64,000 bases of DNA, from positions 226,888-290,887 of IMG/VR virus record IMGVR_UViG_3300042540_001399. The stretch is one strand, 5' to 3'. The notes under the pieces are model-generated. The model did not search any database, was not told the DNA's origin, and worked only from the letters and a program-made list of their open reading frames with translations. Made by a program: the position numbers and the translations under genes. How positions within the stretch are numbered: the first letter of the stretch is position 1; the number at the start of each line of letters is the position of its first letter. This document shows positions 2,840-62,245 of the stretch, piece by piece.

Positions 2840-2904
2840 AATATATTTTTTTTTATAAATATAAAGTTTTTCAAAAAGTAAATAGTTTGATAATATTTAT
2901 TAAT

Positions 2905-4662
2905 ATGTCAAAATTGTCTAAAGTATCTTTTTTTATTTCGATAGTGATTATGTCAATTTATTTTGTGACACAATCTTTACTTGTGACAGGAAACATAAGT
3001 TATAGTAAAAATATCGGTTATGCTGGATATATATGTTTTTTACTTTTTGTATCTTTTTTTGGGATTTACATTTATGAATATTTGAAAAAAAACAAAAAAA
3101 TAAAAAAAAGAAGTGATTACGTTAAAAAATTAAATGAAACATTAATATATCAATCATTAAATTCTTCTTTTTTCGAAGGTAACACGTCAGAAGGCGCTAA
3201 AGTTCTAACTAAAGAAGTCAGTAATTCAATCAATGCTGACAGATGCTCAGTTTGGTTGTACAATACAGACAGAACTTCAATTATTTGTCAACAATTGTAT
3301 TCCAAAAAAACTGACAGCTGGGAACAAAATTATGAATTATTAAAAGAAGATTATAAACCTTATTTTTTATCTCTTTTATTAAATCCTATCATAGTTGCAA
3401 ATGATGCAAGAAATCATAGTGCAACATCATGTTTTAAAGACACTTATCTTGACCCATTGGGTATTAAATCTATGCTTGATGTTCCCATTTCCTACAAGGG
3501 AGACACTATTGGGGTAATATGTATTGAAAATTTTGATTTTAGAATTTGGGACCAAGTTGAAATTGATTTTGCTCAAATGTTATCAGCATTATATTCATTT
3601 GCATATTCAATAAAAGAAAATAATAATGTTAATAAGACAATTGATGATATTGAAGGATTTATAGATCATTCGGTATTAGTAAGTAAAACGGATTCTAAGG
3701 GTAAGATAGTTTATGTGAATAAAAAGTTTGAAGATGTTTCTGGTTGGAAACTTAGTCAGGTAATAGGAAAAGATCATAACATTGTTAATTCAGGAAAACA
3801 TACCAAAAATTTTTGGAAAGACATGTATAAAACAACAGTAGAAAAAAGAAAGATTTGGAACCAAATAGTTACAAATAAAACAAAAAAAGGTGAACTTTAT
3901 TGGGTTGATTCTTATATAATGGCAGAATTTGACGAACAAGATTGTTTAAAAGGGTTTATGTCTATAAGGTATGATGTTACAGATTTGATAAAAAAAACTG
4001 AAGAAATAGCGAAGAAAAATGTTTATTTGGAACATGCCGCAAAAATATTAAGACATGATATGCATTCAGGAATTAATACTTACATACCAAGAGGGATAAG
4101 TTCGTTAGAAAGAAGATTGAGTGATAACCAAATTCAAGAATATAAATTGGAAGCCCCTTTGAAAATGTTGAAAGAAGGTCTCAAACACGCTCAGAAAGTT
4201 TATAAAGGTGTTTATGAATTTACTAATTTAGTAAAAAAAGATTCAGTGCTCAACAAAACTAAAGTAAACTTAAAAGAAATATTAGAAAGTTACCTATCAA
4301 CAACATCATATAAATCACAAGTTGTAATTGATACTTTAGAAGACCATGAAGTTAATGAACCTTTATTTTGTACCGCCATCGATAATTTAATTAGAAATGG
4401 CCTCAAATATAATGACAATGATAACAAATTTGTACATTTATATATGGAAGATTTTCAGTTGGTAATTCAGGATAATGGAAGGGGGCTGTCACAAGAAGAA
4501 TTTGACAATTTATCGAAACCATACGTAAGAAAAGAAAACCAAAAAGAAAGTGGTAGTGGTTTAGGTTTAAATATATGTTTAGCAATACTCAAAGAACACG
4601 GATTCAGCGTTTCTTGTGAAAAAAACCATATAGGCACTAAAATTAAAATTAAATTCAAATGA
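2905..4662 (+). CDS. Membrane sensor histidine kinase, 2TM-GAF-PAS-HisKA-HATPase (HK1)
   Basis: Two N-terminal TM helices; GAF (ADRCSVWL...IKSMLDVPI..GVICIE); PAS (YVNKKFEDVSGW..GKDHNIVNSG..NKTKKGELYWV); H box LRHDMH; N box NLIRNGLKYN; G1 QDNGRGL; G2 GSGLGLNIC; start set at ATG 2905. Confidence 0.92.
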   Translation: MSKLSKVSFFISIVIMSIYFVTQSLLVTGNISYSKNIGYAGYICFLLFVSFFGIYIYEYLKKNKKIKKRSDYVKKLNETLIYQSLNSSFFEGNTSEGAKVLTKEVSNSINADRCSVWLYNTDRTSIICQQLYSKKTDSWEQNYELLKEDYKPYFLSLLLNPIIVANDARNHSATSCFKDTYLDPLGIKSMLDVPISYKGDTIGVICIENFDFRIWDQVEIDFAQMLSALYSFAYSIKENNNVNKTIDDIEGFIDHSVLVSKTDSKGKIVYVNKKFEDVSGWKLSQVIGKDHNIVNSGKHTKNFWKDMYKTTVEKRKIWNQIVTNKTKKGELYWVDSYIMAEFDEQDCLKGFMSIRYDVTDLIKKTEEIAKKNVYLEHAAKILRHDMHSGINTYIPRGISSLERRLSDNQIQEYKLEAPLKMLKEGLKHAQKVYKGVYEFTNLVKKDSVLNKTKVNLKEILESYLSTTSYKSQVVIDTLEDHEVNEPLFCTAIDNLIRNGLKYNDNDNKFVHLYMEDFQLVIQDNGRGLSQEEFDNLSKPYVRKENQKESGSGLGLNICLAILKEHGFSVSCEKNHIGTKIKIKFK

Positions 4663-5261
4663 AAAAAATTTTTTTATTATTCAACTTTTTATTTATAACT
4701 TTTTTGTTACACGGACAAAATTCTTACCCAATCCAAACAATTTTAAAGGGTGATTCAGTTGTAATTTATACCACAGATCAATCAAATGATTTGAATTTGA
4801 CAATAGAAAATCAAAGATTCTTATCATCTACTTATAAAACTAAACTTGAAGACTATAGTAAAAAAATTGACAGTTTAGAAAAAAACATAAATAATAAACA
4901 GATGGTAATAGATAGTTTATATTTAACACATAAAAATCAAGACAGTTTACAACAAAGATTATACGTACTTGAAAATTGGTTAATAAAAGCATCAATTGAC
5001 AACTCTTACATTTATATGTCATGGCCAGATCATACTATTAAATTTGTGGATTTAACATTATATACAGTTCATTGTAGTATGCAAAATGGTACTTTAAGAA
5101 TGATTAGAAGAGGACCAAATGATGAATTTGAAATTTGGAAAGGATTAAATTATATTAGAAAAGAAAGTCCAGAAATTGGTTGGGAAATGAAATATACTGA
5201 AGACGAACGACCAATAGTAAAAAATCTACCAATAAACATAAAAATTAACGACTACAAATAA
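4659..5261 (+). CDS. Secreted/periplasmic coiled-coil protein
   Basis: Signal-peptide-like N-terminus MKKIFLLFNFLFITFLLHG, heptad region; ATGA overlap with HK1. Confidence 0.75.
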   Translation: MKKIFLLFNFLFITFLLHGQNSYPIQTILKGDSVVIYTTDQSNDLNLTIENQRFLSSTYKTKLEDYSKKIDSLEKNINNKQMVIDSLYLTHKNQDSLQQRLYVLENWLIKASIDNSYIYMSWPDHTIKFVDLTLYTVHCSMQNGTLRMIRRGPNDEFEIWKGLNYIRKESPEIGWEMKYTEDERPIVKNLPINIKINDYK

Positions 5262-5262
5262 G

Positions 5263-6717
5263 ATGAAAAAAATAATTTTTATTCTTTTAATATTGTTTTC
5301 ATTCTACAATATAACAATCGCACAAGGACTTATCAAAAATAAAAAAGAAATTACCGAGTCTATGTGGGATCAAGGAGTGCCTGTCTTACCTGAAGATGAA
5401 TATATTTCATCTTTAATTGATAAAGTTGGATTCGATAACTTAAGACAAAGAAATAAAGCCGTTAACAAAGAAGAAGCTAAATTGTGTAGAGAAATTGGTA
5501 TTGCTTTTTACAATAGAGAAATGTATGAAGCTGCTGATTGGTATTTGGAAAGAGTACGAGGTTTTGTTGAAGTTGTTGAACTTGAACCTGAAATAGTTTT
5601 TGAAACTAAAAAAGAAGAAACCGAAGAACCTTCAGAAGATTTATCTGTGGAAGATTTGAAAAGTCTACAGTCAGACAAGGTTTTTTTACAAAACCTACCA
5701 AAAAGTTATGAAAATGTTTCACCTACAGATATGAAAAAATTGGCAGAAGAAATTGAAGGTCAAATAGAAAAACTTATTAAAGAAAAGGAAGAATTACTAA
5801 AAAGACACGCTCCTAAAGAAGTGATAGATGCTAAAGATGCGACTATAGGGTCATTAGGAAAAGAAAAAAAAATCATAGACCTATCAATAGATAAAGACAA
5901 ACTTAAAAATGAAACAAAAGTTTTGGGTATTGAAAAAAGAAATTTGAAATTTTATTTAAATTGGGCAATAGCTATAGGTTTGATATTAATATTAATAATA
6001 TTTGTTTTAATACAGAGAAAAACTATCAAAGGACAGGATAAAGAAATTGATAAACAACTAAATGACATAAATACTAAAAACACGTATTTAGAACATGCGG
6101 CAAGAATAATCAGACATGATATGCATTCTGGTATAAACACATATATTCCAAGGGGTATATCTTCTTTGGAAAAAAGGCTGACTGTCGACGACATGAAAAA
6201 TCTTAAGATCGAAGGTCCAATAAAGATGATTCGTGAAGGTTTAAATCACACCCAAAAAGTTTATAAAAATGTTTATGAATTTACAAATTTAGTTAAACAA
6301 AATGTTGTTTTAGAAAAAACCAAACAAAATATAAAAAATACTTTAGAACAGTTTTTTGTAAAAACATCATACTATAATCAAATCAAAATAAAGAATCTCC
6401 CGACTTTAGAAATTAATGAAGTTCTTTTTTGTGGGGCAATTGAAAACTTTGTGAAAAATGGTCTAAAATACAATAATAACGAAAATAAAGAAGTTTTAAT
6501 TTTTGAAGAAGATAATTATATAGTAGTACAAGATAATGGTATTGGTATGACATCAACTGAATTTGAAAAACAAATTAAAATAGTTTCTAAAGAAGATATT
6601 GGTGAAATCGGTTTAGGCTTAAATATTTCAATTGCCATTTTAAAAGAACACGGATTTAGTGTTGAATGTGAAAAAAATGAAATTGGAACTAAAATAAAAA
6701 TTAAATTTAAAAGTTAA
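5263..6717 (+). CDS. Sensor histidine kinase with extracytoplasmic helical domain (HK2)
   Basis: Signal peptide, TPR-like helices and coiled coil, one TM (WAIAIGLILILIIFVLI), H box IRHDMH, N box NFVKNGLKYN, G1 QDNGIGM, short G2 EIGLGLNIS. Confidence 0.88.
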   Translation: MKKIIFILLILFSFYNITIAQGLIKNKKEITESMWDQGVPVLPEDEYISSLIDKVGFDNLRQRNKAVNKEEAKLCREIGIAFYNREMYEAADWYLERVRGFVEVVELEPEIVFETKKEETEEPSEDLSVEDLKSLQSDKVFLQNLPKSYENVSPTDMKKLAEEIEGQIEKLIKEKEELLKRHAPKEVIDAKDATIGSLGKEKKIIDLSIDKDKLKNETKVLGIEKRNLKFYLNWAIAIGLILILIIFVLIQRKTIKGQDKEIDKQLNDINTKNTYLEHAARIIRHDMHSGINTYIPRGISSLEKRLTVDDMKNLKIEGPIKMIREGLNHTQKVYKNVYEFTNLVKQNVVLEKTKQNIKNTLEQFFVKTSYYNQIKIKNLPTLEINEVLFCGAIENFVKNGLKYNNNENKEVLIFEEDNYIVVQDNGIGMTSTEFEKQIKIVSKEDIGEIGLGLNISIAILKEHGFSVECEKNEIGTKIKIKFKS

Positions 6718-6721
6718 AAAA

Positions 6722-7159
6722 ATGATTGATTCTATTTTATTAGTTGATGATGAGGATTTATTCCACTTGGTGTTTGAAGACGCTTGTTCTTTATTGGACA
6801 TAAGTTTATCTTTAAAATCTATAAATAGTGCAGATGAAGCGGCATCAATGTTTAAAAAATGGTTAGAAGAAAAAACACCAGAAAGTAGACCTGAATGTGT
6901 TTTTGTTGATCTTAATATAATTGGTAGTTCATTTGATGGTATTGAACTTATAAGAAAAATAAATTTCGAATACGGAAATCATGTTGTAATAGGAATTATT
7001 TCATCATCTAACGAACCAGAAGAACAAGCTAAAGCACTACAAGCAGGTGCACAATTTTGGATTATAAAATCTGATGAAATTGAACCTAGACTTGAAGAAT
7101 TCAAAAAAGATTATGATCAGTATAAAAACAGAACCGCACCATTTAAAGTATACAAATGA
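6722..7159 (+). CDS. Single-domain response regulator (CheY-like receiver)
   Basis: ILLVDDED acidic pocket, phospho-acceptor in VFVDLN, IISSS, conserved K in WIIK; no output domain. Confidence 0.92.
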   Translation: MIDSILLVDDEDLFHLVFEDACSLLDISLSLKSINSADEAASMFKKWLEEKTPESRPECVFVDLNIIGSSFDGIELIRKINFEYGNHVVIGIISSSNEPEEQAKALQAGAQFWIIKSDEIEPRLEEFKKDYDQYKNRTAPFKVYK

Positions 7160-7833
7160 TTAAAATAGATAGTAATACTAAAAAAACTTTAATTGATCTT
7201 TATAACAAAAAGGGTATAGGTCTTGAAGGTAATATTACTAAACTTATAGATGTTGAAAACGACGAAGAGTTCAAAACGTATTTAAAAGAATGTAAGGCTA
7301 AAGACGAAGAAAAAAGAAAAAAACGTCTTGACATGACAAAAAAAATACAAAAACAAAATGAAGATTTGGTTGTTGCAAACACAGAAAACAATAGAATTAT
7401 GGAGGAACTTCAACAAAGTTTACTTGAAGTTGAAGAATCCAAAACAATTTTTGAAAACCAAAACAAAGAACTCAACGATTGGAAAAAAGAAAATTTAGAA
7501 CTGACTGAAAAATTACAAATTGAAATGTCAAACGCTGAAATGGCTAAGTTAGAAGCCTTGAAGGCTAAGGAAATGGCGGAAAATGATTTAGACTTGTTAC
7601 AGAAAAAAAATCAAACAGAACTTATTTCTACTATAGTCAGAGTTGCTTTATGGGTAATTGTTGGTGTTGGTATAATTACTACTGGTGTTTATATGTTCAC
7701 TTTATTATTAGGTAAAGACACACAGGTTATTAGTGCTGCGTGGTCAAATATTTTTGGTATTTTACTTACCAATGCATTTTCAATAGTGGGTACTATTATG
7801 GGGATTAAATATGCAACTGAAAATAAACAATAA
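7156..7833 (+). CDS. Coiled-coil protein with two C-terminal TM helices
   Basis: Long heptad region then VALWVIVGVGIITTGVYMFTLLL and AAWSNIFGILLTNAFSIVGTIMGI; ATGA overlap with the receiver gene. Confidence 0.8.
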   Translation: MIKIDSNTKKTLIDLYNKKGIGLEGNITKLIDVENDEEFKTYLKECKAKDEEKRKKRLDMTKKIQKQNEDLVVANTENNRIMEELQQSLLEVEESKTIFENQNKELNDWKKENLELTEKLQIEMSNAEMAKLEALKAKEMAENDLDLLQKKNQTELISTIVRVALWVIVGVGIITTGVYMFTLLLGKDTQVISAAWSNIFGILLTNAFSIVGTIMGIKYATENKQ

Positions 7834-7843
7834 AAAATAGATT

Positions 7844-8680
7844 ATGTTACTTAAAGTAGGATCAGAAGGGGCTGATGTAAAAAAACTCCAAGAAAAATTA
7901 GGTGTTGAAACAATAGGAAAGTTTGGACCTAAAACCGAAGCTGCGGTAAAAGCATGGCAAAAAGCAAATGGATTAAAAGATGATGGTATTGTTGGTGATG
8001 CAACTTGGAGCAAAATGTTTGGGGAATCTACCCCAAAAACAAATGTTATTAAAGAAGATGTTGTTATACCAAGTGGTGGTCCTTTAAATATTGAAAAGTT
8101 AAAAGGACACATACCTGATTCTGTTTTGGCCCAAATTCCGGAAACCGCAAAAAAATTTAATATTACAAACAATTTAAGATTAGCACACTTTTTATCACAA
8201 TGTGGTCATGAATCTGGTGGATTCAAAGCTGTCAGTGAAAATTTAAATTATTCAGCCGATGGTTTAAAAAAGATTTTTGGAAAATACTTTCCGGGTAACC
8301 TGAATGAATCTTACGCTCGTAAACCCGAAAAAATTGCGTCCCGTGTTTATGGTAACAGGATGGGAAATGGTGATGAGGCGTCAGGCGAAGGATATAAATT
8401 CAGAGGTAGGGGTTACATCCAACTTACAGGAAAAAGTAACTATACAAATTTTTCTAAATTTATAGGTGAAGATTGTGTTTCAAATCCTGATTTAGTTGCA
8501 ACAAAATATCCTTTAGCGTCTGCGGCATTCTTTTTTGATTCAAATAAATTGTGGTCTATTTGTGACAAGGGAGCCGATGATGCCACTGTTACATCTGTAA
8601 CCAAAAGAGTTAATGGGGGAATTTTAGGTTTATCAGACAGAATTAAACACTTTAAAGAGTATTATAACCTTATTAAGTGA
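7844..8680 (+). CDS. Endolysin: peptidoglycan-binding domain plus glycoside hydrolase family 19
   Basis: PG_binding_1 (LKVGSEGADVKKLQEKL..GKFGPKTEAAVKAWQ..DGIVGDATW) and GH19 motifs (LAHFLSQCGHES, ENLNYS, FRGRGYIQLTGKSNY, TKRVNGG). Confidence 0.93.
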   Translation: MLLKVGSEGADVKKLQEKLGVETIGKFGPKTEAAVKAWQKANGLKDDGIVGDATWSKMFGESTPKTNVIKEDVVIPSGGPLNIEKLKGHIPDSVLAQIPETAKKFNITNNLRLAHFLSQCGHESGGFKAVSENLNYSADGLKKIFGKYFPGNLNESYARKPEKIASRVYGNRMGNGDEASGEGYKFRGRGYIQLTGKSNYTNFSKFIGEDCVSNPDLVATKYPLASAAFFFDSNKLWSICDKGADDATVTSVTKRVNGGILGLSDRIKHFKEYYNLIK

Positions 8681-8884: not shown

Positions 8885-8901
8885 ATTGTGTAAATAGACT
8901 T

Positions 8902-8930
8902 AAAAACCCTCGATAATTTCGGGGGTTTTT
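8902..8930 (+). terminator. Rho-independent terminator
   Basis: AAAAACCCTCGA-TAAT-TTCGGGGGTTTTT hairpin with U tract. Confidence 0.75.
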
Positions 8931-8967
8931 ATTTTTGTAACATATTTATTATATAAAAATTAAATTT

Positions 8968-9624
8968 ATGAAAAAGTTGATAACTGAAAACGAAAAAAAT
9001 AGAATTAGAAAAATGAATTCTATTGATGAAAGTTTATTTTCAGATGTGTTGGCATCAATACAAAAATCAGAAACTTTTCAGGATCTTAAAAAGAAATTCA
9101 AGGAATTAACGGGTGTTGACTTTGAAGAAAAAGAAAAGTCGGGAGATGTAAGCAAAGATTTCAAAAATTATAAAATTACCGAACCTAATGATGATGACAT
9201 CAAGTTTTATAAAAAAATACTTGAAAAATTGGACGCACCTAATACTAAAGAAAATTTAGCGTTTCTTTACGCGTGGAGACAAGCGGAGGGTGCAAAATCC
9301 GCCTTTAACCCTTTTAATACCACACAAGAAATGGATAGTTCAACATTTATGAACTGTCTGAAGAAAAAAGATAATAAGTGTATTGGGGGAGTTAGAAATT
9401 ATAAATCTGAAAAAGATGGAATAGATGCTACAGTCAAAACTTTGAAAAATGGTAGATATGATTGTATTGTTAATGGTTTACAAAAAAATAAAGGGTCAAA
9501 AGATATCGCCAAATGTAGTTCTTTAGATACTTGGGGAACAAAAGACGGTATTTTAAGAGTTTTAGATGGTGGTAAAATAAATCCACCTGAAATATCAAGA
9601 TCCACAATAAAAAAAGTTGATTAA
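8968..9624 (+). CDS. Virion-type protein with lysozyme-like C-terminal domain
   Basis: AWRQAEG..FNPFNTTQ..GVRNY..DGIDATVKTLKNGRY pattern; N-terminal LITE..RIRKM..IDES motif. Confidence 0.55.
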   Translation: MKKLITENEKNRIRKMNSIDESLFSDVLASIQKSETFQDLKKKFKELTGVDFEEKEKSGDVSKDFKNYKITEPNDDDIKFYKKILEKLDAPNTKENLAFLYAWRQAEGAKSAFNPFNTTQEMDSSTFMNCLKKKDNKCIGGVRNYKSEKDGIDATVKTLKNGRYDCIVNGLQKNKGSKDIAKCSSLDTWGTKDGILRVLDGGKINPPEISRSTIKKVD

Positions 9625-9625
9625 T

Positions 9626-10234
9626 ATGGAAGAATACGTAGGGATTATTATTGCGTTTATAACAGGTGTGTTGGGACCAATATTACTTTTATACTTGAAA
9701 AACAAATTAGAAAAAAAAGAAAAGCCAGACATGGTCAAAGACACTCTGAGAGTTGCTGAGTTGGTAAATAATAAAATTGAACATATTCGTGAAGAATTTA
9801 ATGCCGATCGTGTTTGGGTTACACAATTTCATAATGGTGGTAATTTTTATCCTACAGGTAAATCAATGGCAAAATTTTCAATAATGTATGAAACAGTAAA
9901 TTCTGGCGTTTCTTCAGTTCAAACTAATTTTCATAATATACCTGTTAACCTTTTTTCTAAGTCTATAAATCAATTATTAAATAACGATACTATTGAAATT
10001 GCCGACTACAAAGATGAAACAATAGCAACTTACGGACTAAAATATATTGCTGAAGATACAGGTTGTAAATCAAGTTACTTATTTGCAATAAAAACAATTG
10101 ATGAAAAGTTTATTGGTACATTAGGTTTAGATTATACCAAAAGAAAAACTAAATTAGATATTGAATCTATAAATCATTTATTGGTTCACGCAACGTCTTT
10201 AGGTGGTGTTTTGATGACACACTTGTCTGAATAA
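9626..10234 (+). CDS. N-terminal TM plus GAF-like domain protein (T4 holin T-like architecture)
   Basis: TM GIIIAFITGVLGPILLLYL; GAF-like region NADRVWVTQFHNGG...LFAIKTIDEKFIGTLGLDY. Confidence 0.55.
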   Translation: MEEYVGIIIAFITGVLGPILLLYLKNKLEKKEKPDMVKDTLRVAELVNNKIEHIREEFNADRVWVTQFHNGGNFYPTGKSMAKFSIMYETVNSGVSSVQTNFHNIPVNLFSKSINQLLNNDTIEIADYKDETIATYGLKYIAEDTGCKSSYLFAIKTIDEKFIGTLGLDYTKRKTKLDIESINHLLVHATSLGGVLMTHLSE

Positions 10235-10269: not shown

Positions 10270-10758
10270 ATGAATATTTTTTTTCTTGACTACGATACCC
10301 AAAAATGTGCACAATATCATTGCGATAAACATGTGGTCAAGATGGTATTAGAAACTGCACAACTTTTATGTGGGGTTCATCATACAACCCCCCAAGTTAC
10401 CCCCCAAGTTCCCTACAAGTTATCCCACAAAAATCACCCATGCGCAATATGGACTCGTGAAAGTTTATCAAACTACTTATATCTTTGTGATCTTGGTTTA
10501 GAATTATGTAATGAATATAGTTTTAGATATGGTAAAACACATAAGTCACAACAAGTAATCGAGTGGTGTCTTGATAATAAACCAAACATAGTTGATAAAG
10601 GTTTTACCACACCACCAAAAGCAATGCCCGATGAATATAAAGTTTTTGACGTTATTGAATCTTATAGAAACTACTATCGTGGGGCAAAAAAAAGTTTTGC
10701 TTCATGGAAAAATAGACAAATACCCGATTGGTTTCAAACTGATGAAGTATTTATATGA
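10270..10758 (+). CDS. Pyrimidine-dimer DNA glycosylase / endonuclease V-like protein
   Basis: MNIFFLD..CAQYHCDKHVVKMVLETAQLL and HKNHPCAIW motifs of the Pyr_excise family; TATTTTTG promoter element at 10258. Confidence 0.8.
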   Translation: MNIFFLDYDTQKCAQYHCDKHVVKMVLETAQLLCGVHHTTPQVTPQVPYKLSHKNHPCAIWTRESLSNYLYLCDLGLELCNEYSFRYGKTHKSQQVIEWCLDNKPNIVDKGFTTPPKAMPDEYKVFDVIESYRNYYRGAKKSFASWKNRQIPDWFQTDEVFI

Positions 10759-12296
10759 TAAAATCATATATGAAAGGTTTATTAAATGAACATTTGACTA
10801 GAATAAGATCATTGATGTCTATCAATGAATCTTTAGTTGATGCATACCCAAAATTTTCGAAAAAAATATTTGATGAAGTAGACCCTACTTGGGGTGGTGG
10901 GCCAAATTCGCATTCATCAAGACACCCTGATGCATCCGGCAAAGATTGGTTTAGTAATAACGCATACGACATCATGGCACCTGAAGGGACACCAATATAT
11001 TCAATATCGGAAGGTTATGTTGATAAAATTACCGACAATCCACCAGGTTTAAGATCAGTTGGTGGTAAGAGAATTTATGGGGACAGTTTAACCATTAGAG
11101 GAACAGGGGGTGATCCCGATGTTTTCTACACACATGTAACAAAAATTGTTGTTGAAGAGGGACAATACGTTGATAGGGGTCAATTATTAGCATTCATAAT
11201 CAAAGGGGAGTTGGGTATACCTGAACACGTTCATGTTGCAGTAAAAGTTGGTGATGTGAAAGATTTCTTAGATGTTGATGGAAACATAAACAGAGTCAAT
11301 ATTGATTTAGTGGATAGACTAAAAATCTTACCAACAAACAAGGAACTTGAAGTGACAACCGACCCAAAAACAATAATGGGCGCTGCGGCCGGTCTTACCG
11401 CATCAGCTATAAGTTCTTTAAATATTAATAGACCTGAGTCTGACATCAGTGGCATTGCAACAAGATTCGGTATTAAAGATACTGATGTTAACATGGATTC
11501 GGTATCAGGTGTTTTGAATAAAATAATATTATCTTCTGAAGGTCTTGGTACTGATGAAACTGGAATTCATGATGCAATAAAGAAATTAAAAAGTTGTTAT
11601 GAACTTGATGAAATTAACAAAATTGTAGAAAGAAAAGAAATCGACGGAAAAAAATACAAAGACATTTATGATTATATAAATAGTGAAATGAATTATGGTG
11701 ATGAGCTGTTTGTAAAAAGTTTAGTAAAAACCATAAATAATATATGTCCTGATACCGTAACTGATAAAGGTACTCAAATAGTGAAAGTAACAAGATCATC
11801 ATCTTTAGGATCTGGAATCGATAGAGTCAGTCCTATAAAATTATTAAATGATCTAAAATCATATGGATTATCTGATAAGGCCGCCAAAGGTGTTGTTGCG
11901 AATGCTTTTGGTGAAAGTGGGTTTAACGTTAAGGCTAAAGGAGATTCTGGACCCAACGCCGAAAACAACACAAGATCAATAAATATAGATGGTAAAAAAT
12001 ACTGTTCGTTTGGATTGTGGCAATATAATGTCTGTGGTGGTATGGGGGTTTCTTATTTGAAGAACTATAATATAGATGTTGACAGATCAACAGACGCTGA
12101 AAAAATCAGGGTTCTATTTGATTATAATAAACAAATTGAATTTATGTCTAAAAGAATTAAAGAAGAACAATCCAAAAGCGAAAAAGATGTTAGAACATGG
12201 ATTGATTGGATTGTTGATAATGTAGAAAGACCATCAGATAGATACGGTGCAAAAATGAAAAGACAAGAATTTGCAAAACAACAAGGTTGGTCTTAA
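10755..12296 (+). CDS. Multidomain wall hydrolase: M23 peptidase, annexin-like repeat, phage tail lysozyme
   Basis: M23 (AYDIMAPEGTPIY..YTHV..HVHVAV); GLGTDE annexin-like segment; tail lysozyme (GLSDKAAKGVVANAFGESGFN..SFGLWQYN). Confidence 0.8.
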   Translation: MIKSYMKGLLNEHLTRIRSLMSINESLVDAYPKFSKKIFDEVDPTWGGGPNSHSSRHPDASGKDWFSNNAYDIMAPEGTPIYSISEGYVDKITDNPPGLRSVGGKRIYGDSLTIRGTGGDPDVFYTHVTKIVVEEGQYVDRGQLLAFIIKGELGIPEHVHVAVKVGDVKDFLDVDGNINRVNIDLVDRLKILPTNKELEVTTDPKTIMGAAAGLTASAISSLNINRPESDISGIATRFGIKDTDVNMDSVSGVLNKIILSSEGLGTDETGIHDAIKKLKSCYELDEINKIVERKEIDGKKYKDIYDYINSEMNYGDELFVKSLVKTINNICPDTVTDKGTQIVKVTRSSSLGSGIDRVSPIKLLNDLKSYGLSDKAAKGVVANAFGESGFNVKAKGDSGPNAENNTRSINIDGKKYCSFGLWQYNVCGGMGVSYLKNYNIDVDRSTDAEKIRVLFDYNKQIEFMSKRIKEEQSKSEKDVRTWIDWIVDNVERPSDRYGAKMKRQEFAKQQGWS

Positions 12297-17429: not shown

Positions 17430-17457
17430 AAAAGGAGGACTTTTAATCCTCCTTTTT
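17428..17457. terminator. Bidirectional terminator
   Basis: AAAAAAGGAGGA-CTTTTAA-TCCTCCTTTTT between convergent peptidase and clpC genes. Confidence 0.75.
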
Positions 17458-19503
17458 CTTTCTACCTTTTTTCTTGGGTTCAGGTTTAGATCTATCTTCT
17501 ATACTTATTGTTTGTGTTTCTCCTTCTCCCTCAACAAATAACATATAATCAGTTCCTTCGACAACTTCGTTTGTTAGAATTTTTTCAGAAATAAGATCTT
17601 CTATTTTATCTTGTATTGCTCTTTTTATTGGTCTTGCACCATATTGGTCATCAAACCCAACTTTTGATATGAAATCAATGACAGAATTTTCATATGAAAC
17701 TTTGTATTTCATAGATGATAATCTAGAAATGAGTTTATCAATTTCTAATTTAACAATTTTATCTATGTGATCTTTTTTAAGTGAATTAAAAATAATAACG
17801 TCATCAATTCTATTTAAAAATTCAGGTGCAAAAAACTTACTTAATTCTTTTTTAAGAATGTCTCTTTTATATTCTTCTTGGATTGCATCACTATTATTAT
17901 TTGTTTTAAAACCAACACCACTACCAAAATCCTGTAATTTCTTTACCCCAATATTTGATGTCATAATTATTAGGCAATTTTTGAAATTTATTTTTCTGCC
18001 TAATCCGTCAGTTAAATGGCCATCATCCAACAATTGAAGTAATGTGGAAAAAACATCTTTATTTGCCTTTTCAATTTCATCAAACAAAATTACAGAATAA
18101 GGTTTGTTCTTTACTTGCTCTGTTAATTGACCCCCTTCTTCATGACCAACGTATCCTGGTGGTGATCCTATCAAACGTGAAATGGTATGTTTTTCTTGAA
18201 ACTCACTCATATCTACCCTAATTAAACTATCTTCACTACCAAATATTTCTTTTGCCAATTGTTTTGCTAAAAAAGTTTTACCAACACCTGTTGATCCTAA
18301 AAATATAAAAGAACCAATTGGTCTATTTGGATCTTTTATACCTACCCTATTTCTTCTTATAGATTTAGAAATTTTACCTACAGCTTCTTCCTGTCCAATT
18401 ACATTTTTATTTAATGTTGTTTCAAGATTGACTAAAGAATTTTTTTCATCAATGTTTATTTTACTAACAGGAATTTTAGTCATGTTGGACACAACTTCGT
18501 AAATTAGTTCTTCAGGTATACCCCTTTTACTATTTTTAAGGTCTTCTTCAAATTTCTTTTTTTCTTCTTCAAGTTTTAAGAGAATACTTCTTTCACGATC
18601 CCTAAGTTCTGCCGCTTGTTCATAATTTTGTTTTTTTATGACATTAAGTTTTTCTTGTTTAATTTCTTGGGCTTCTATTTTCAATTTTTCAATTGACTCG
18701 GGTAGTTTAATATCTATTTGCATTCGTGACCCAACCTCATCTAAAATATCAAAAGCTTTATCTGGAAATTCCCGATCGGTAATATATCTATCCGCTAGCT
18801 CAACACATAACCAAAGTGAATCATCAGTGTAATTAACTTTGTGATGTTCTTCATACTTCGATTTACTTTGTTTCAGAATTTCAAAAGTTTCTTCTTTTGT
18901 TGATGGATCTACAATAATTTTTTGAAACCGTCTTTCTAAAGCCCCATCTTTTTCGAAATGTTTTCTATACTCATCTAAAGTGGTTGCTCCAATACACTGT
19001 ATTTCACCTCTTGAAAGTGCTGGTTTAAATATGTTTGATGCATCCAAAGAACCCGAGCTATTACCGGCACCAACCATAGTGTGAATTTCGTCGATAAAAA
19101 GAATAATGTTAGGCGTGTTTTGAAGTTCTTCTATTATAACTTTCATTCTTTCTTCAAACTGACCTCTATATTTTGTTCCAGCAACAATAGAATTTATATC
19201 TAAGGAAACTATCCTTTTATCTACTAAATTTTTTGGACAATCGCCACTATAAATCATCATTGCCAAACCTTCTGCAATTGCCGTTTTACCTGCACCTGGT
19301 TCTCCAATAATAATAGGATTATTTTTCTTTCTTCTTGAAAGAACTTGAGCAATCCTAAAAATTTCTTTTTCTCTACCAATTACTGGATCTAATTTACCTT
19401 GTTCGGCAAGTTTAATTAAATCTTTACTAAAATTGTCTAAAACAGGCGTTCCACCATCTGTCTTTTTTTTGTTTTTTTCATTATCATCTACAAAATCTAA
19501 CAT
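17443..19503 (-). CDS. clpC: ClpC-type Hsp100 AAA+ ATPase lacking the N-terminal Clp-repeat domain
   Basis: Walker A motifs GEPGAGKT and GSTGVGKT, IDEIH, FDEIEKA, UVR middle domain (KQNYEQAAELRDRE), FAPEFLNRID, GARPIKR; begins directly at the first ATPase domain. Confidence 0.9.
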   Translation of the reverse strand: MLDFVDDNEKNKKKTDGGTPVLDNFSKDLIKLAEQGKLDPVIGREKEIFRIAQVLSRRKKNNPIIIGEPGAGKTAIAEGLAMMIYSGDCPKNLVDKRIVSLDINSIVAGTKYRGQFEERMKVIIEELQNTPNIILFIDEIHTMVGAGNSSGSLDASNIFKPALSRGEIQCIGATTLDEYRKHFEKDGALERRFQKIIVDPSTKEETFEILKQSKSKYEEHHKVNYTDDSLWLCVELADRYITDREFPDKAFDILDEVGSRMQIDIKLPESIEKLKIEAQEIKQEKLNVIKKQNYEQAAELRDRERSILLKLEEEKKKFEEDLKNSKRGIPEELIYEVVSNMTKIPVSKINIDEKNSLVNLETTLNKNVIGQEEAVGKISKSIRRNRVGIKDPNRPIGSFIFLGSTGVGKTFLAKQLAKEIFGSEDSLIRVDMSEFQEKHTISRLIGSPPGYVGHEEGGQLTEQVKNKPYSVILFDEIEKANKDVFSTLLQLLDDGHLTDGLGRKINFKNCLIIMTSNIGVKKLQDFGSGVGFKTNNNSDAIQEEYKRDILKKELSKFFAPEFLNRIDDVIIFNSLKKDHIDKIVKLEIDKLISRLSSMKYKVSYENSVIDFISKVGFDDQYGARPIKRAIQDKIEDLISEKILTNEVVEGTDYMLFVEGEGETQTISIEDRSKPEPKKKGRKKKED

Positions 19504-59368: not shown

Positions 59369-62245
59369 ATGGCAGAGCAAAATATTAATCAATATGTGTT
59401 TCAAAAGTACAAAATCAATACTGTTTATGATTCTATGGACATGTCATTGGCTTCAGATGAAAGAAACTATAATGAAGAAGTAATATTTTCACCATACCTA
59501 ATTGCTGAAACTTATGGTAATAAATTACCAATAAACATAGATATCAATAACCCTTTAACATCTCAATGGCTCACATTAACTTATAAAAATTTTAATCCTA
59601 ACAACGTTTTTGTTTCACAAAACTATTACAATCCAGAAAATAAAGATTTAGGGTGTTTTTCATCAAGCACATTGTGTGATGTGGGTCTTACAGGTATTGA
59701 TAATGGTCTTGTTAATAAAATGACAGGTGAAACCTTAAATTATACGGAAGGCTTATATGACGACTATTTAAAATTTAATAGGTTGTATTTCGATAGAAGA
59801 ATGAAAATGTTTCAAGTAACAGGATACACAGAATCATATAATCGATTTTCAGGCATACCAAAAAATACACTCTATGAGATTGTAAGCAAAGAAAACATAC
59901 AATATGGTAAATATCACGAATTGTATGGTGGATTTTATCAAGGATTTTATAAGTTATTTGGATTTGATTATGAAGTTTTACCCGAAAGAATGTCTAAAGG
60001 TTGGTCGGTTGAAATGTTATTGAAACCTAGATTTGTTAATGAATATAACCCACTACCCTCAGAAACAACTTTAAATCAAATTTACCCACAAAATAAAAAC
60101 ACATTTTTTTATTTTGGTACAAGGGCTGAAAACAAGTTTTATCACCACGCGGATGGACACCCAAGTTGTTTGACTGGTTATACAAGAGTTACAGAAAAAC
60201 TTAGTGGTTGTCCATCGACATGTTCTTGTTGTGATAAAACAATAACAAACAGTCGATGTATATATGTTTATCCACCAAGGTCTTTGAATGATAAGCACGA
60301 CCCACATATAAATTACGGTTGTGACAAATGTAAAGGTGACAGAAAAATATCCGTAAGTTGTGGTTGTGGTTGTGAAGAAAAACCGTGTCAAATATGTGGT
60401 TGGGAATGTCAAACACACAAATGTGAAACAGTAATTTTACCAACACCAACTCCGACACCAACCCCAACACCTACTCCTGTATGTGAAATACCAACACCAA
60501 TATGTACACCAAGTTGTACAAAATGTGATAGTTGTGATGAATGTACAACATGTGAAACAACGGGTTTTACATCTATTGAGTACACTTGTGAAACAGATCC
60601 ACTTTTTGATGTTATGTCAAATAACATAGCTTTCAAATTGTGTGGCGATGTAAAAAACCCACAGATAGGGGTAAAAGTTTTAAGATTTACGGGTGGTTGT
60701 GAAACAACAGGAACATGTGTTACAGGTCAAACTTATATGACTGGTTATACAATAGAAGAATTTTGTACGCCACCTATATACCCATATTGTGAAATTGTAA
60801 ATCCTGATTTTCTTAATTATGAGCATTGGTTTTTAGTAAATGTAGTATGGGAAAGATATTCTTGGTATGACTTTTGCGATCTCAAATTTTTTGGTGGTTT
60901 AGGGGATATTACAAAATTTGAATATTTGGAATCTTTGGCTAATAATGCGGTTGAACTTATTCGTCCGCCATTGACTCATAATGATAAAAATGGTGACACT
61001 ATAGAATTAGTTAATTTGAACAAGACTTGGTTGGATGATAAAAAATATAGACTTGGTAGACTAAAAATTTATGTTAACGGAAAAAAAATATATACAAAAG
61101 AAAACTTTGAAGAAGTAATACCAAGAGGATTATTTACGGACAAAGAAAAACAAATAGGAGTTCCATTCAACATTTCATGGGGTGGTGGTACTCAGGGATT
61201 ACATGAAAACTTAACGTTTTCATCTTGTTCGGCACTTACTTCAAATTATATTCAGGATCCGGAGTGTCTTCCTAATAATATTTTGAGTGGTACATCATTA
61301 TCATCTTTAACCACTAACATTCTATTGGAACAAAACTTTGGTGGGACATTTGAAGGTGCCATATCACAATTTAGAATGTATATTGAACCATTGACTTCAG
61401 ATGAAGTAAAACACAATTTTAATTTACTAAAGTATAAATTTAATCTTTTTGATCCGAATTGCCCTGATTGTGATACAACAAAATGTTTACCTAATGACTT
61501 AACTTATAACATAAATGACAACATACTTACCACTACAACAACTTTTATTCCTAACCCAACGACAATACCTTTTAAGCTAGGTAGGTATTACAAAATGGAT
61601 GGTCGTGACTTGAACTTTTTAATTAAAAATAATTTATCAAAAATAACATCTTTGATTGGGATTAAAACAAATCAAAATTTAAATAGCAAATATTGGGACG
61701 ACAATGGTTGGTGGGGGAATCAAGGGAACACACCTCAATGTGTTGGTTACTCTTGGGCTCATTGGTTAGAAGATGGACCTGTAAGTCAGTCAGGAATACC
61801 ACCAATTATAAAACCAAATGATATTTATATTAACGCACAAAAATTGGATCAATGGGTTGGTGAAAACTATGATGGTACATCAGTTAGGGGTGGGGTAAAA
61901 TATTTAAAAAAAATTGGTAAAGTACAATCTTATTTTTGGGCGTTTGACCTAAACACTTTGATTGACACAGTTTTTAAATATGGACCTGTTGTCGTAGGTA
62001 CTAATTGGTATTCTAACATGTTTTACCCAACTAAAACTGGTATGATTAAAGTTGGTGGTAAACTAGTTGGTGGTCATGCTTACGTTGTTAATGGTGTTGA
62101 TAAAAAAAATAAAACTTTTAGGATAAAAAATAGTTGGGGTAAGTCTTGGGGTAAAAATGGTAGTGCAACAATATCATTTGCCGATATGTCAAGACTAATA
62201 AAAGAAAACGGAGAAATTTGTTTGGCTATAGAAATAGGTAGTTAA
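59369..62245 (+). CDS. Large virion protein: LamG/ConA-like elements, Cys-rich/Pro-Thr linker, C-terminal papain-like (C1) protease
   Basis: LKIYVNG and GAISQFRMYIEPLTSDEV (LamG-like); NQGNTPQCVGYSWAH, GGHAY and KNSWGKSWG give the Q-C-H-N papain catalytic set. Confidence 0.82.
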   Translation: MAEQNINQYVFQKYKINTVYDSMDMSLASDERNYNEEVIFSPYLIAETYGNKLPINIDINNPLTSQWLTLTYKNFNPNNVFVSQNYYNPENKDLGCFSSSTLCDVGLTGIDNGLVNKMTGETLNYTEGLYDDYLKFNRLYFDRRMKMFQVTGYTESYNRFSGIPKNTLYEIVSKENIQYGKYHELYGGFYQGFYKLFGFDYEVLPERMSKGWSVEMLLKPRFVNEYNPLPSETTLNQIYPQNKNTFFYFGTRAENKFYHHADGHPSCLTGYTRVTEKLSGCPSTCSCCDKTITNSRCIYVYPPRSLNDKHDPHINYGCDKCKGDRKISVSCGCGCEEKPCQICGWECQTHKCETVILPTPTPTPTPTPTPVCEIPTPICTPSCTKCDSCDECTTCETTGFTSIEYTCETDPLFDVMSNNIAFKLCGDVKNPQIGVKVLRFTGGCETTGTCVTGQTYMTGYTIEEFCTPPIYPYCEIVNPDFLNYEHWFLVNVVWERYSWYDFCDLKFFGGLGDITKFEYLESLANNAVELIRPPLTHNDKNGDTIELVNLNKTWLDDKKYRLGRLKIYVNGKKIYTKENFEEVIPRGLFTDKEKQIGVPFNISWGGGTQGLHENLTFSSCSALTSNYIQDPECLPNNILSGTSLSSLTTNILLEQNFGGTFEGAISQFRMYIEPLTSDEVKHNFNLLKYKFNLFDPNCPDCDTTKCLPNDLTYNINDNILTTTTTFIPNPTTIPFKLGRYYKMDGRDLNFLIKNNLSKITSLIGIKTNQNLNSKYWDDNGWWGNQGNTPQCVGYSWAHWLEDGPVSQSGIPPIIKPNDIYINAQKLDQWVGENYDGTSVRGGVKYLKKIGKVQSYFWAFDLNTLIDTVFKYGPVVVGTNWYSNMFYPTKTGMIKVGGKLVGGHAYVVNGVDKKNKTFRIKNSWGKSWGKNGSATISFADMSRLIKENGEICLAIEIGS

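Follow-up and report, generated by a model that had tools for sequence, protein, structure and literature searches.

A membrane-anchored coiled-coil protein of a giant T4-like phage, and its possible role as the lysis-related output of a phage-encoded kinase-receiver pathway

We analyzed the last 64 kb (64,000 nucleotides, hereafter "the window") of the 290,887-bp IMG/VR virus record IMGVR_UViG_3300042540_001399 (positions 226,888 to 290,887), which is rated 99% complete by CheckV and is about 30% GC. The phage is T4-like: the window encodes a T4-type large terminase (Terminase_6N), a gp20-type portal (Portal_T4), and a gp23-type capsid protein (Gp23), but no T-type holin was found in the genome (Phage_holin_T absent). 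The locus of interest contains, in order, the following features, all on the + strand:

2887..4662 (+), histidine kinase 1: two N-terminal TM segments, then cytoplasmic GAF (Pfam, 4.6e-13), PAS (PAS_9, 1.6e-08), and HATPase_c (1.1e-13) domains
4659..5261 (+), a 200-aa protein with an N-terminal signal-like segment and no family match in Pfam or PHROGs
5263..6717 (+), histidine kinase 2: a signal/TM segment, an extracytoplasmic region of about 210 aa, a TM segment, and a kinase core (HATPase_c, 1.1e-08) with an H-box nearly identical to that of kinase 1
6722..7159 (+), a stand-alone receiver of 145 aa (Response_reg, 1.2e-09) with an intact acidic pocket (D9, D10), D63, S94/S95, and K116, and a conserved C-terminal tail
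7156..7263 (+), N-terminal module of the 225-aa target protein (aa 1-36), a proposed input or receiver-docking adaptor
7264..7623 (+), cytoplasmic coiled coil of the target protein (aa 37-156)
7624..7707 (+), TM1 (aa 157-184), continuous with the coiled coil
7708..7731 (+), short loop (aa 185-192), predicted to be periplasmic, with a conserved acidic residue (D188)
7732..7815 (+), TM2 (aa 193-220), the most conserved part, with a ladder of polar and small residues (W196, S197, N198, T205, N206, S209, G212, T213, G216)
7816..7833 (+), short polar C-terminal tail and stop codon
7844..8680 (+), endolysin (PG_binding_1 + Glyco_hydro_19; PHROG 181 endolysin, 5.1e-68), with no signal or SAR segment
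8717..8884 (+), 55-aa holin of the Pam3 gp28 family (Phage_holin_10, PF23987, 1.1e-15)
8901..8931 (+), terminator-like hairpin, a 13-pair stem followed by a T run

The sequence-only reading had described ORF 7156-7833 as starting within the ATGA that ends the receiver ORF, encoding a cytoplasmic coiled coil of about 165 aa, two C-terminal TM helices and a short polar tail, and being followed 10 nt later by the endolysin. This observation is confirmed, with one correction: the soluble part is not a 165-aa coiled coil but a 36-aa conserved module plus a 120-aa coiled coil that continues into TM1. The ATG overlaps the receiver's stop by 4 nt, the ORF stops at 7833, and the endolysin ATG lies at 7844. 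The terminator-like hairpin at 8901-8931 is the only such site on the + strand between 2400 and 10400, so that the stretch from kinase 1 to the holin looks like one transcription unit, although a promoter scan of the region performed no better than on shuffled sequence.

Kyte-Doolittle hydropathy peaks at aa 157-181 and 196-217, and the charge distribution (KK/R before TM1, K...K after TM2, and a neutral 5-residue loop) fits, in our reading of the sequence, a topology with both termini in the cytoplasm. The AlphaFold2 model (pLDDT 81.5) gives two short N-terminal helices, one uninterrupted helix from aa 37 to 185 (pLDDT above 90 over aa 60-130), a three-residue turn, and a helix from aa 189 to 223. 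A single heptad register holds over aa 37-156, with core positions 71% and 47% hydrophobic against 33% overall and a 3.5-residue periodicity (p=0.003). The C-terminal position of the TM segments, the coiled coil preceding them without a signal peptide, the positive charges flanking the cytoplasmic ends, and the absence of an embedded or adjacent lipobox gene rule out an i-spanin/o-spanin assignment; separate spanin-like pairs exist in relatives.

The protein matches no described family in the databases searched. Pfam and PHROG scans returned no hit at E<=0.01, with only scattered subthreshold hits at E<=1 across 17 family members, so that membership in a curated holin family is not supported. 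A tblastn search of 50,697 deposited phage genomes found no match, a Foldseek search of the model against the PDB gave nothing at E<=0.001 and only generic helical hairpins, a profile search of PDB sequences gave only spurious coiled coils, and an ESM Atlas feature search returned only the protein's own unnamed viral clusters and no named cluster for aa 140-225. A word-based search nevertheless found 6,129 homologues at E<=0.01, the best 120 of which are all 224-230 aa long, 76-84% identical, and unnamed apart from a few inconsistent automatic JGI labels, and an exhaustive search of 50%-identity representatives found 223 clusters. Among 185,579 species genomes, a profile search matched only 8 contigs, all of them from MAGs assigned to eight unrelated phyla and carrying phage-like genes; we read these as mis-binned phage DNA, which allows no host assignment. 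The family, thousands of sequences from public metagenomes spanning 31-66% GC, is thus essentially viral and appears confined to phages. Together with the strongly patterned conservation described below, these numbers show that the ORF is far more than chance.

Among close relatives, the first 36 residues and the hairpin are almost invariant, while the middle of the coiled coil varies; the LEGN motif of the N-terminal module is kept in distant relatives. Across 54 sequences (the query plus 53 representatives), TM2 has a mean entropy of 0.71 bits, with 21 of 28 positions below 1 bit and no helical periodicity (p=0.47), whereas TM1 has a mean entropy of 1.65 bits and a strong 100-degree periodicity (p<1e-4), with one conserved and one variable face. 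TM2 carries two Asn, several Ser and Thr, and a GxxxG, and the loop keeps D or E in 48 of 54 sequences. The spacing between an anchor in the N-module (L58) and one at the coiled-coil/TM junction (L145) takes only the values 38, 45, 52, 59, 66, 73, 80, or 87 residues in 37 of 38 family representatives, i.e., it changes in whole heptads. Length is free but phase is not, as expected if the helix is a continuous coiled coil coupling input to hairpin, although heptad-quantized indels are expected of any continuous coiled coil and not only of signaling ones.

We next examined 80 IMG/VR loci (56-100% identity). A receiver homologue lies directly upstream in all 79 that have enough flank; in the 74 loci where the junction could be measured, stop and start overlap by 4 nt in 62 and by 1 nt in 10, and are separated by a 5-nt gap in 2. 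A kinase lies upstream of the receiver in all related loci with enough flank, and the 200-aa protein recurs between two kinases in a subset of relatives. The same kinase-receiver-target order is kept in relatives at 34-51% identity and at 42-66% GC. The receiver, which has no output domain, keeps its phospho-acceptor residues invariant in an alignment with a mean column identity of 89% and is more conserved (82-93%) than either neighbor, the target being 56-77% identical in the same loci. It is the only receiver gene in each of three complete genomes, and the two kinases are the only HATPase_c genes in this genome.

Several representatives of the 50%-identity clusters lack the N-terminal module and carry in its place a GAF domain (P0133) or one or two PAS domains (P0161, P0169, and P0173), as do the proteins at loci L100-L103, fused to the same coiled coil and hairpin and to no other domain. 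None of the nine loci encoding such forms (L009-L011, L095, L096, and L100-L103) shows a receiver or kinase in the flanks, whereas 13 of 14 additional loci with the N-module do; the exception has a divergent receiver-like gene with the same C-terminal tail. The AlphaFold2 model of P0161 shows a PAS fold whose last strand leads into one helix, aa 114-188, that becomes TM1, and in PAS-fused forms the distance from the PAS D/N-x-T motif to the junction is 36 or 43. The coiled coil and hairpin therefore look like a portable signaling output, and the N-terminal module like the part that replaces a sensor when the signal comes through a receiver. Two further apparent fusions are not used as evidence: P0270 (N-module and coiled coil plus a kinase H-box) lies on a 1-kb contig at 1.27x coverage whose 3' end reads as an unrelated WD40-like frame and is probably chimeric, and P0222 (fused to an ABC-permease-like region) also looks chimeric. 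Docking of the receiver on the N-module remains an inference; a complex prediction for the receiver and aa 1-80, a kind of test proposed beforehand, returned scores of 0.61, 0.21, and 0.00, which count neither for nor against binding.

The link to lysis rests on context. Among the 80 loci, an endolysin is adjacent downstream in 29, within 2 kb downstream in 9, divergent just upstream of the kinase in 11, and absent from the flanks in 31; an endolysin thus lies within about 3 kb in 49 of 80 loci and, after deduplication at 90% identity, in 23 of 35 lineages, with none in the fetched flanks of the other 12. One lineage (L054) has replaced GH19 with a Peptidase_M15 enzyme plus an 80-aa two-TM protein. 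The sensor-fused forms lie beside GH19 (L009, L010, L100, and L102), GH24 Phage_lysozyme (L103), Peptidase_M15_3 with overlapping stop and start (L095), a PG_binding_1 enzyme together with Phage_holin_4_1 (L101, the holin also in L102), small 2-TM proteins, and spanin-like TM/lipoprotein pairs (L009 and L010). The association survives replacement of the endolysin family, the holin family, and the entire input side, which argues for a functional tie. The invariant unit is, however, kinase-receiver-target and not target-endolysin, and the region is otherwise a hypervariable accessory part of these genomes, which weakens arguments from neighborhood; in the contig of representative P0178, for example, the triad is followed by unrelated genes, with no lysis gene nearby.

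Our preferred, still tentative, explanation is that the 225-aa protein is the membrane output of the phage's own two-component pathway and that this pathway controls host lysis after translation. In this view, kinase 1, with cytoplasmic GAF and PAS domains, and kinase 2, with an extracytoplasmic domain, would sense different compartments and both phosphorylate the single receiver, which would dock on the N-terminal module of the target. The change would travel down a rigid, register-preserving parallel coiled coil into TM1 and alter the packing of a homo-oligomeric hairpin bundle in which TM2 forms the buried, polar inner layer and TM1 the lipid-facing outer layer. The bundle would open, or be prevented from opening, a small ion-conducting lesion; holins fire when the membrane potential drops, so this would set the moment at which the separate small holin triggers and the cytoplasmic endolysin escapes. 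In relatives, a fused PAS or GAF sensor would do the same job without a kinase or receiver. The gene order and its conservation, the fusions, the predicted helical architecture, and the conservation patterns come from the analysis itself, whereas phosphotransfer, receiver binding, signal transmission, oligomerization, lesion formation, endolysin release, any binding to the holin, and an effect on lysis timing are inferred, without experimental or structural evidence. The sequence-only reading, which had proposed a holin, antiholin, or pore-like effector whose oligomerization could be gated by the phosphorylated receiver, is thus partly supported: an output of the receiver is well supported by comparative evidence and a lysis-related membrane effector is supported by context, while the evidence does not choose between holin, antiholin, and pore.

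Several alternatives remain, each of which we consider less likely. The hairpin may be an antiholin or holin modulator that binds the phage holin inside the membrane and delays or licenses hole formation, with the receiver or fused sensor switching this binding, giving a lysis-inhibition system analogous in logic to T4 RI/RIII acting on holin T; this would suit a T4-like phage lacking a T-type holin in which a separate canonical holin lies in the same cassette (Phage_holin_10 here, Phage_holin_4_1 in L101 and L102). However, TM2 is nearly invariant across relatives whose neighboring holins belong to unrelated families, whereas described antiholins are specific to their holin, and in one complete genome (G001) the target lies next to the endolysin while the Phage_holin_10 homologue is 36 kb away, which fits a pore/trigger or a holin role better than a holin-specific partner; we regard this alternative as unlikely but the strongest of the rivals. 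It is more doubtful that the protein is itself the holin and the 55-aa protein accessory. In many relatives the endolysin directly follows this gene and no recognized holin lies within 6 kb (L033-L040 and L044-L046), in L006-L008 the gene after the endolysin encodes a soluble-looking 78-aa protein, and the endolysin, lacking a secretion signal, needs a hole. The protein fits in part the picture of a small membrane protein encoded in a lysis cassette: it has two TM segments and lies beside an endolysin, but it is 225 aa long with a large cytoplasmic part, and 12 of 35 lineages lack a nearby endolysin. Against the holin reading, it resembles no holin family in Pfam or PHROGs and carries a 150-aa cytoplasmic sensor-linked extension unlike the holins described so far, and complete genomes that lack an adjacent small holin still encode a Phage_holin_10 homologue elsewhere.

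An output unrelated to lysis, in which the hairpin manipulates host membrane physiology in response to sensed conditions (ion flux, energy state, superinfection exclusion, or a pause in infection) and the endolysin is only a frequent neighbor, also appears unlikely. It would fit the invariance of the kinase-receiver-target unit, the 31 of 80 loci without a flanking endolysin, the contig of P0178, and highly variable downstream genes that include DnaK, an asparagine-synthetase-like gene, and phosphoesterases; yet endolysins of four different families recur beside the module even after gene-order changes and replacement of the input side, and we estimate that a random gene in a 290-kb genome would lie within 3 kb of the endolysin about 2% of the time. 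Equally doubtful as the holin reading is a passive tether that only localizes the receiver or fused sensor at the membrane, for example near the two membrane-bound kinases, with the real output elsewhere. The high conservation of the receiver relative to the target suggests further partners, but a simple anchor would not keep 21 of 28 TM2 positions below 1 bit of entropy, including membrane-embedded Asn, Ser, and Thr, across cluster representatives, and the fused forms have no domain other than sensor, coiled coil, and hairpin. We read the conservation of TM2 on all faces, of TM1 on one face, and of the acidic loop residue as self-assembly rather than anchoring or holin-specific binding, although all-face conservation of TM2 would also fit binding to a conserved host membrane protein.

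Textbook lysis timing rests on holin accumulation, with T4 lysis inhibition as the main example of signal-dependent delay. This locus offers a different logic, in which a phage-encoded sensory pathway, with two kinases looking at different compartments and one receiver without a DNA-binding domain, would be hard-wired to a membrane effector in the lysis operon, with natural one-component versions. In the literature searched, we found no description of this family, of PAS/GAF-fused or otherwise sensor-linked lysis proteins, or of a phage two-component relay ending on a membrane protein; a survey of jumbo-phage genomics mentions only a divergent receiver tied to NAD systems. We regard the system as a variation on known lysis control. 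There is a real chance, though less than even, that it represents a new class of phage lysis protein, a ligand- or phosphorylation-gated oligomeric pore driven through a phase-locked coiled coil, that would let abundant T4-like jumbo phages compute the moment of lysis from intracellular and extracellular signals. If the function holds, it makes the long-standing question of what phages sense when they decide to lyse directly testable with a compact, modular protein, and it would supply a natural sensor-to-membrane-lesion switch.

Compared with two-TM phage holins (class II holins and pinholins such as S21 68, and the Pam3 gp28 family), the protein shares a membrane hairpin encoded beside an endolysin, TM helices rich in Gly, Ser, Thr, and Asn, and a short charged C-terminal tail, but it has no sequence similarity to them, carries a 155-aa cytoplasmic N-terminal module and coiled coil, coexists with a canonical holin, and has a receiver or a fused PAS/GAF sensor as its input side. 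In T4 lysis inhibition, where the antiholins RI and RIII act on holin T, lysis timing responds to a sensed signal through accessory proteins acting at the membrane, as it would in this phage, but no T, RI, or RIII homology was found here, and the signal would arrive through a phosphorelay or fused sensor rather than through direct periplasmic binding. CheY acting on FliM offers a precedent for a single-domain receiver with no DNA-binding output whose target has a short, highly conserved N-terminal segment, although here the target is a membrane hairpin protein in a phage and docking is only inferred. PAS/GAF signaling-helix architectures of sensor kinases and chemoreceptors share the sensor domain followed by a continuous coiled coil whose length changes only in heptad steps, preserving helical phase to the output, but that output is here a bare two-TM hairpin and not a kinase, cyclase, or methyl-accepting domain. 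By architectural analogy only, CorA and MCU-type channels combine a cytoplasmic regulatory part, a long helix continuous with TM1, a short acidic external loop, TM2, and a basic C-terminal end; our protein has no sequence or fold match to them and no GMN or DIME motif. Finally, LytSR control of CidAB/LrgAB also links a two-component system to holin-like membrane proteins and cell lysis, but that control is transcriptional, through a DNA-binding regulator in bacteria, whereas here the receiver has no DNA-binding domain and the link would be protein to protein and encoded by a phage.

At window 2887-6717 we find two histidine kinases that share nearly identical H-box regions but differ in their sensors, one carrying cytoplasmic GAF and PAS domains and the other an extracytoplasmic domain of about 210 aa, with a 200-aa secreted-looking protein encoded between them. 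Many relatives have only the GAF-PAS kinase, whereas a subset (for example, the relatives' loci L018, L024, L026, and L097) share the three-gene form. In the alignment of receiver sequences (A3), the receiver ends at aa 138-145 in a conserved tail (T-x-P-F-K-[VI]-Y-[KR]), which is kept even in a 66% GC relative and in the divergent receiver-like protein of locus L013, and which may be a docking motif. A further contig of 1,006 bp (L094) reads as a receiver tail, then the N-terminal module of the target protein plus its coiled coil fused to a kinase-type H-box, and then an unrelated WD40-like frame; it has low coverage and is probably a chimeric assembly, although, if real, it would imply that the N-terminal module also feeds a kinase.

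Downstream of the target gene, a strong terminator-like hairpin (window 8901-8931; 13-pair stem plus T run) lies immediately after the gene for the 55-aa holin. In addition, a 205-aa protein with an N-terminal TM segment (window 9617-10234; PHROG 38864, unknown function) recurs close to the endolysin/holin in many relatives and may be a further member of the cassette; in loci L080, L082, L090, and L091 it sits 35 nt downstream of the target gene on the opposite strand. A membrane protein of 174-180 aa, which has no annotation, directly follows the target gene in about 18 loci (L055-L069, L081, L083, and L086), sometimes lying between it and the endolysin.

Other features of the window include the following:
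206-1220, a cluster of four tRNA genes (Glu-TTC, Asp-GTC, Met-CAT, and Arg-TCT)
10755-12296, a 513-aa protein with Peptidase_M23 and Phage tail lysozyme domains
17443-19503, minus strand, a ClpB-like double AAA+ chaperone
59369-62245, a 958-aa protein with a C-terminal papain-like (Peptidase_C1) domain

The chaperone is encoded by the phage, and relatives also carry DnaK close to the target locus. The 513-aa protein lies 2 kb downstream of the lysis genes and is probably a virion-associated wall hydrolase rather than the endolysin.
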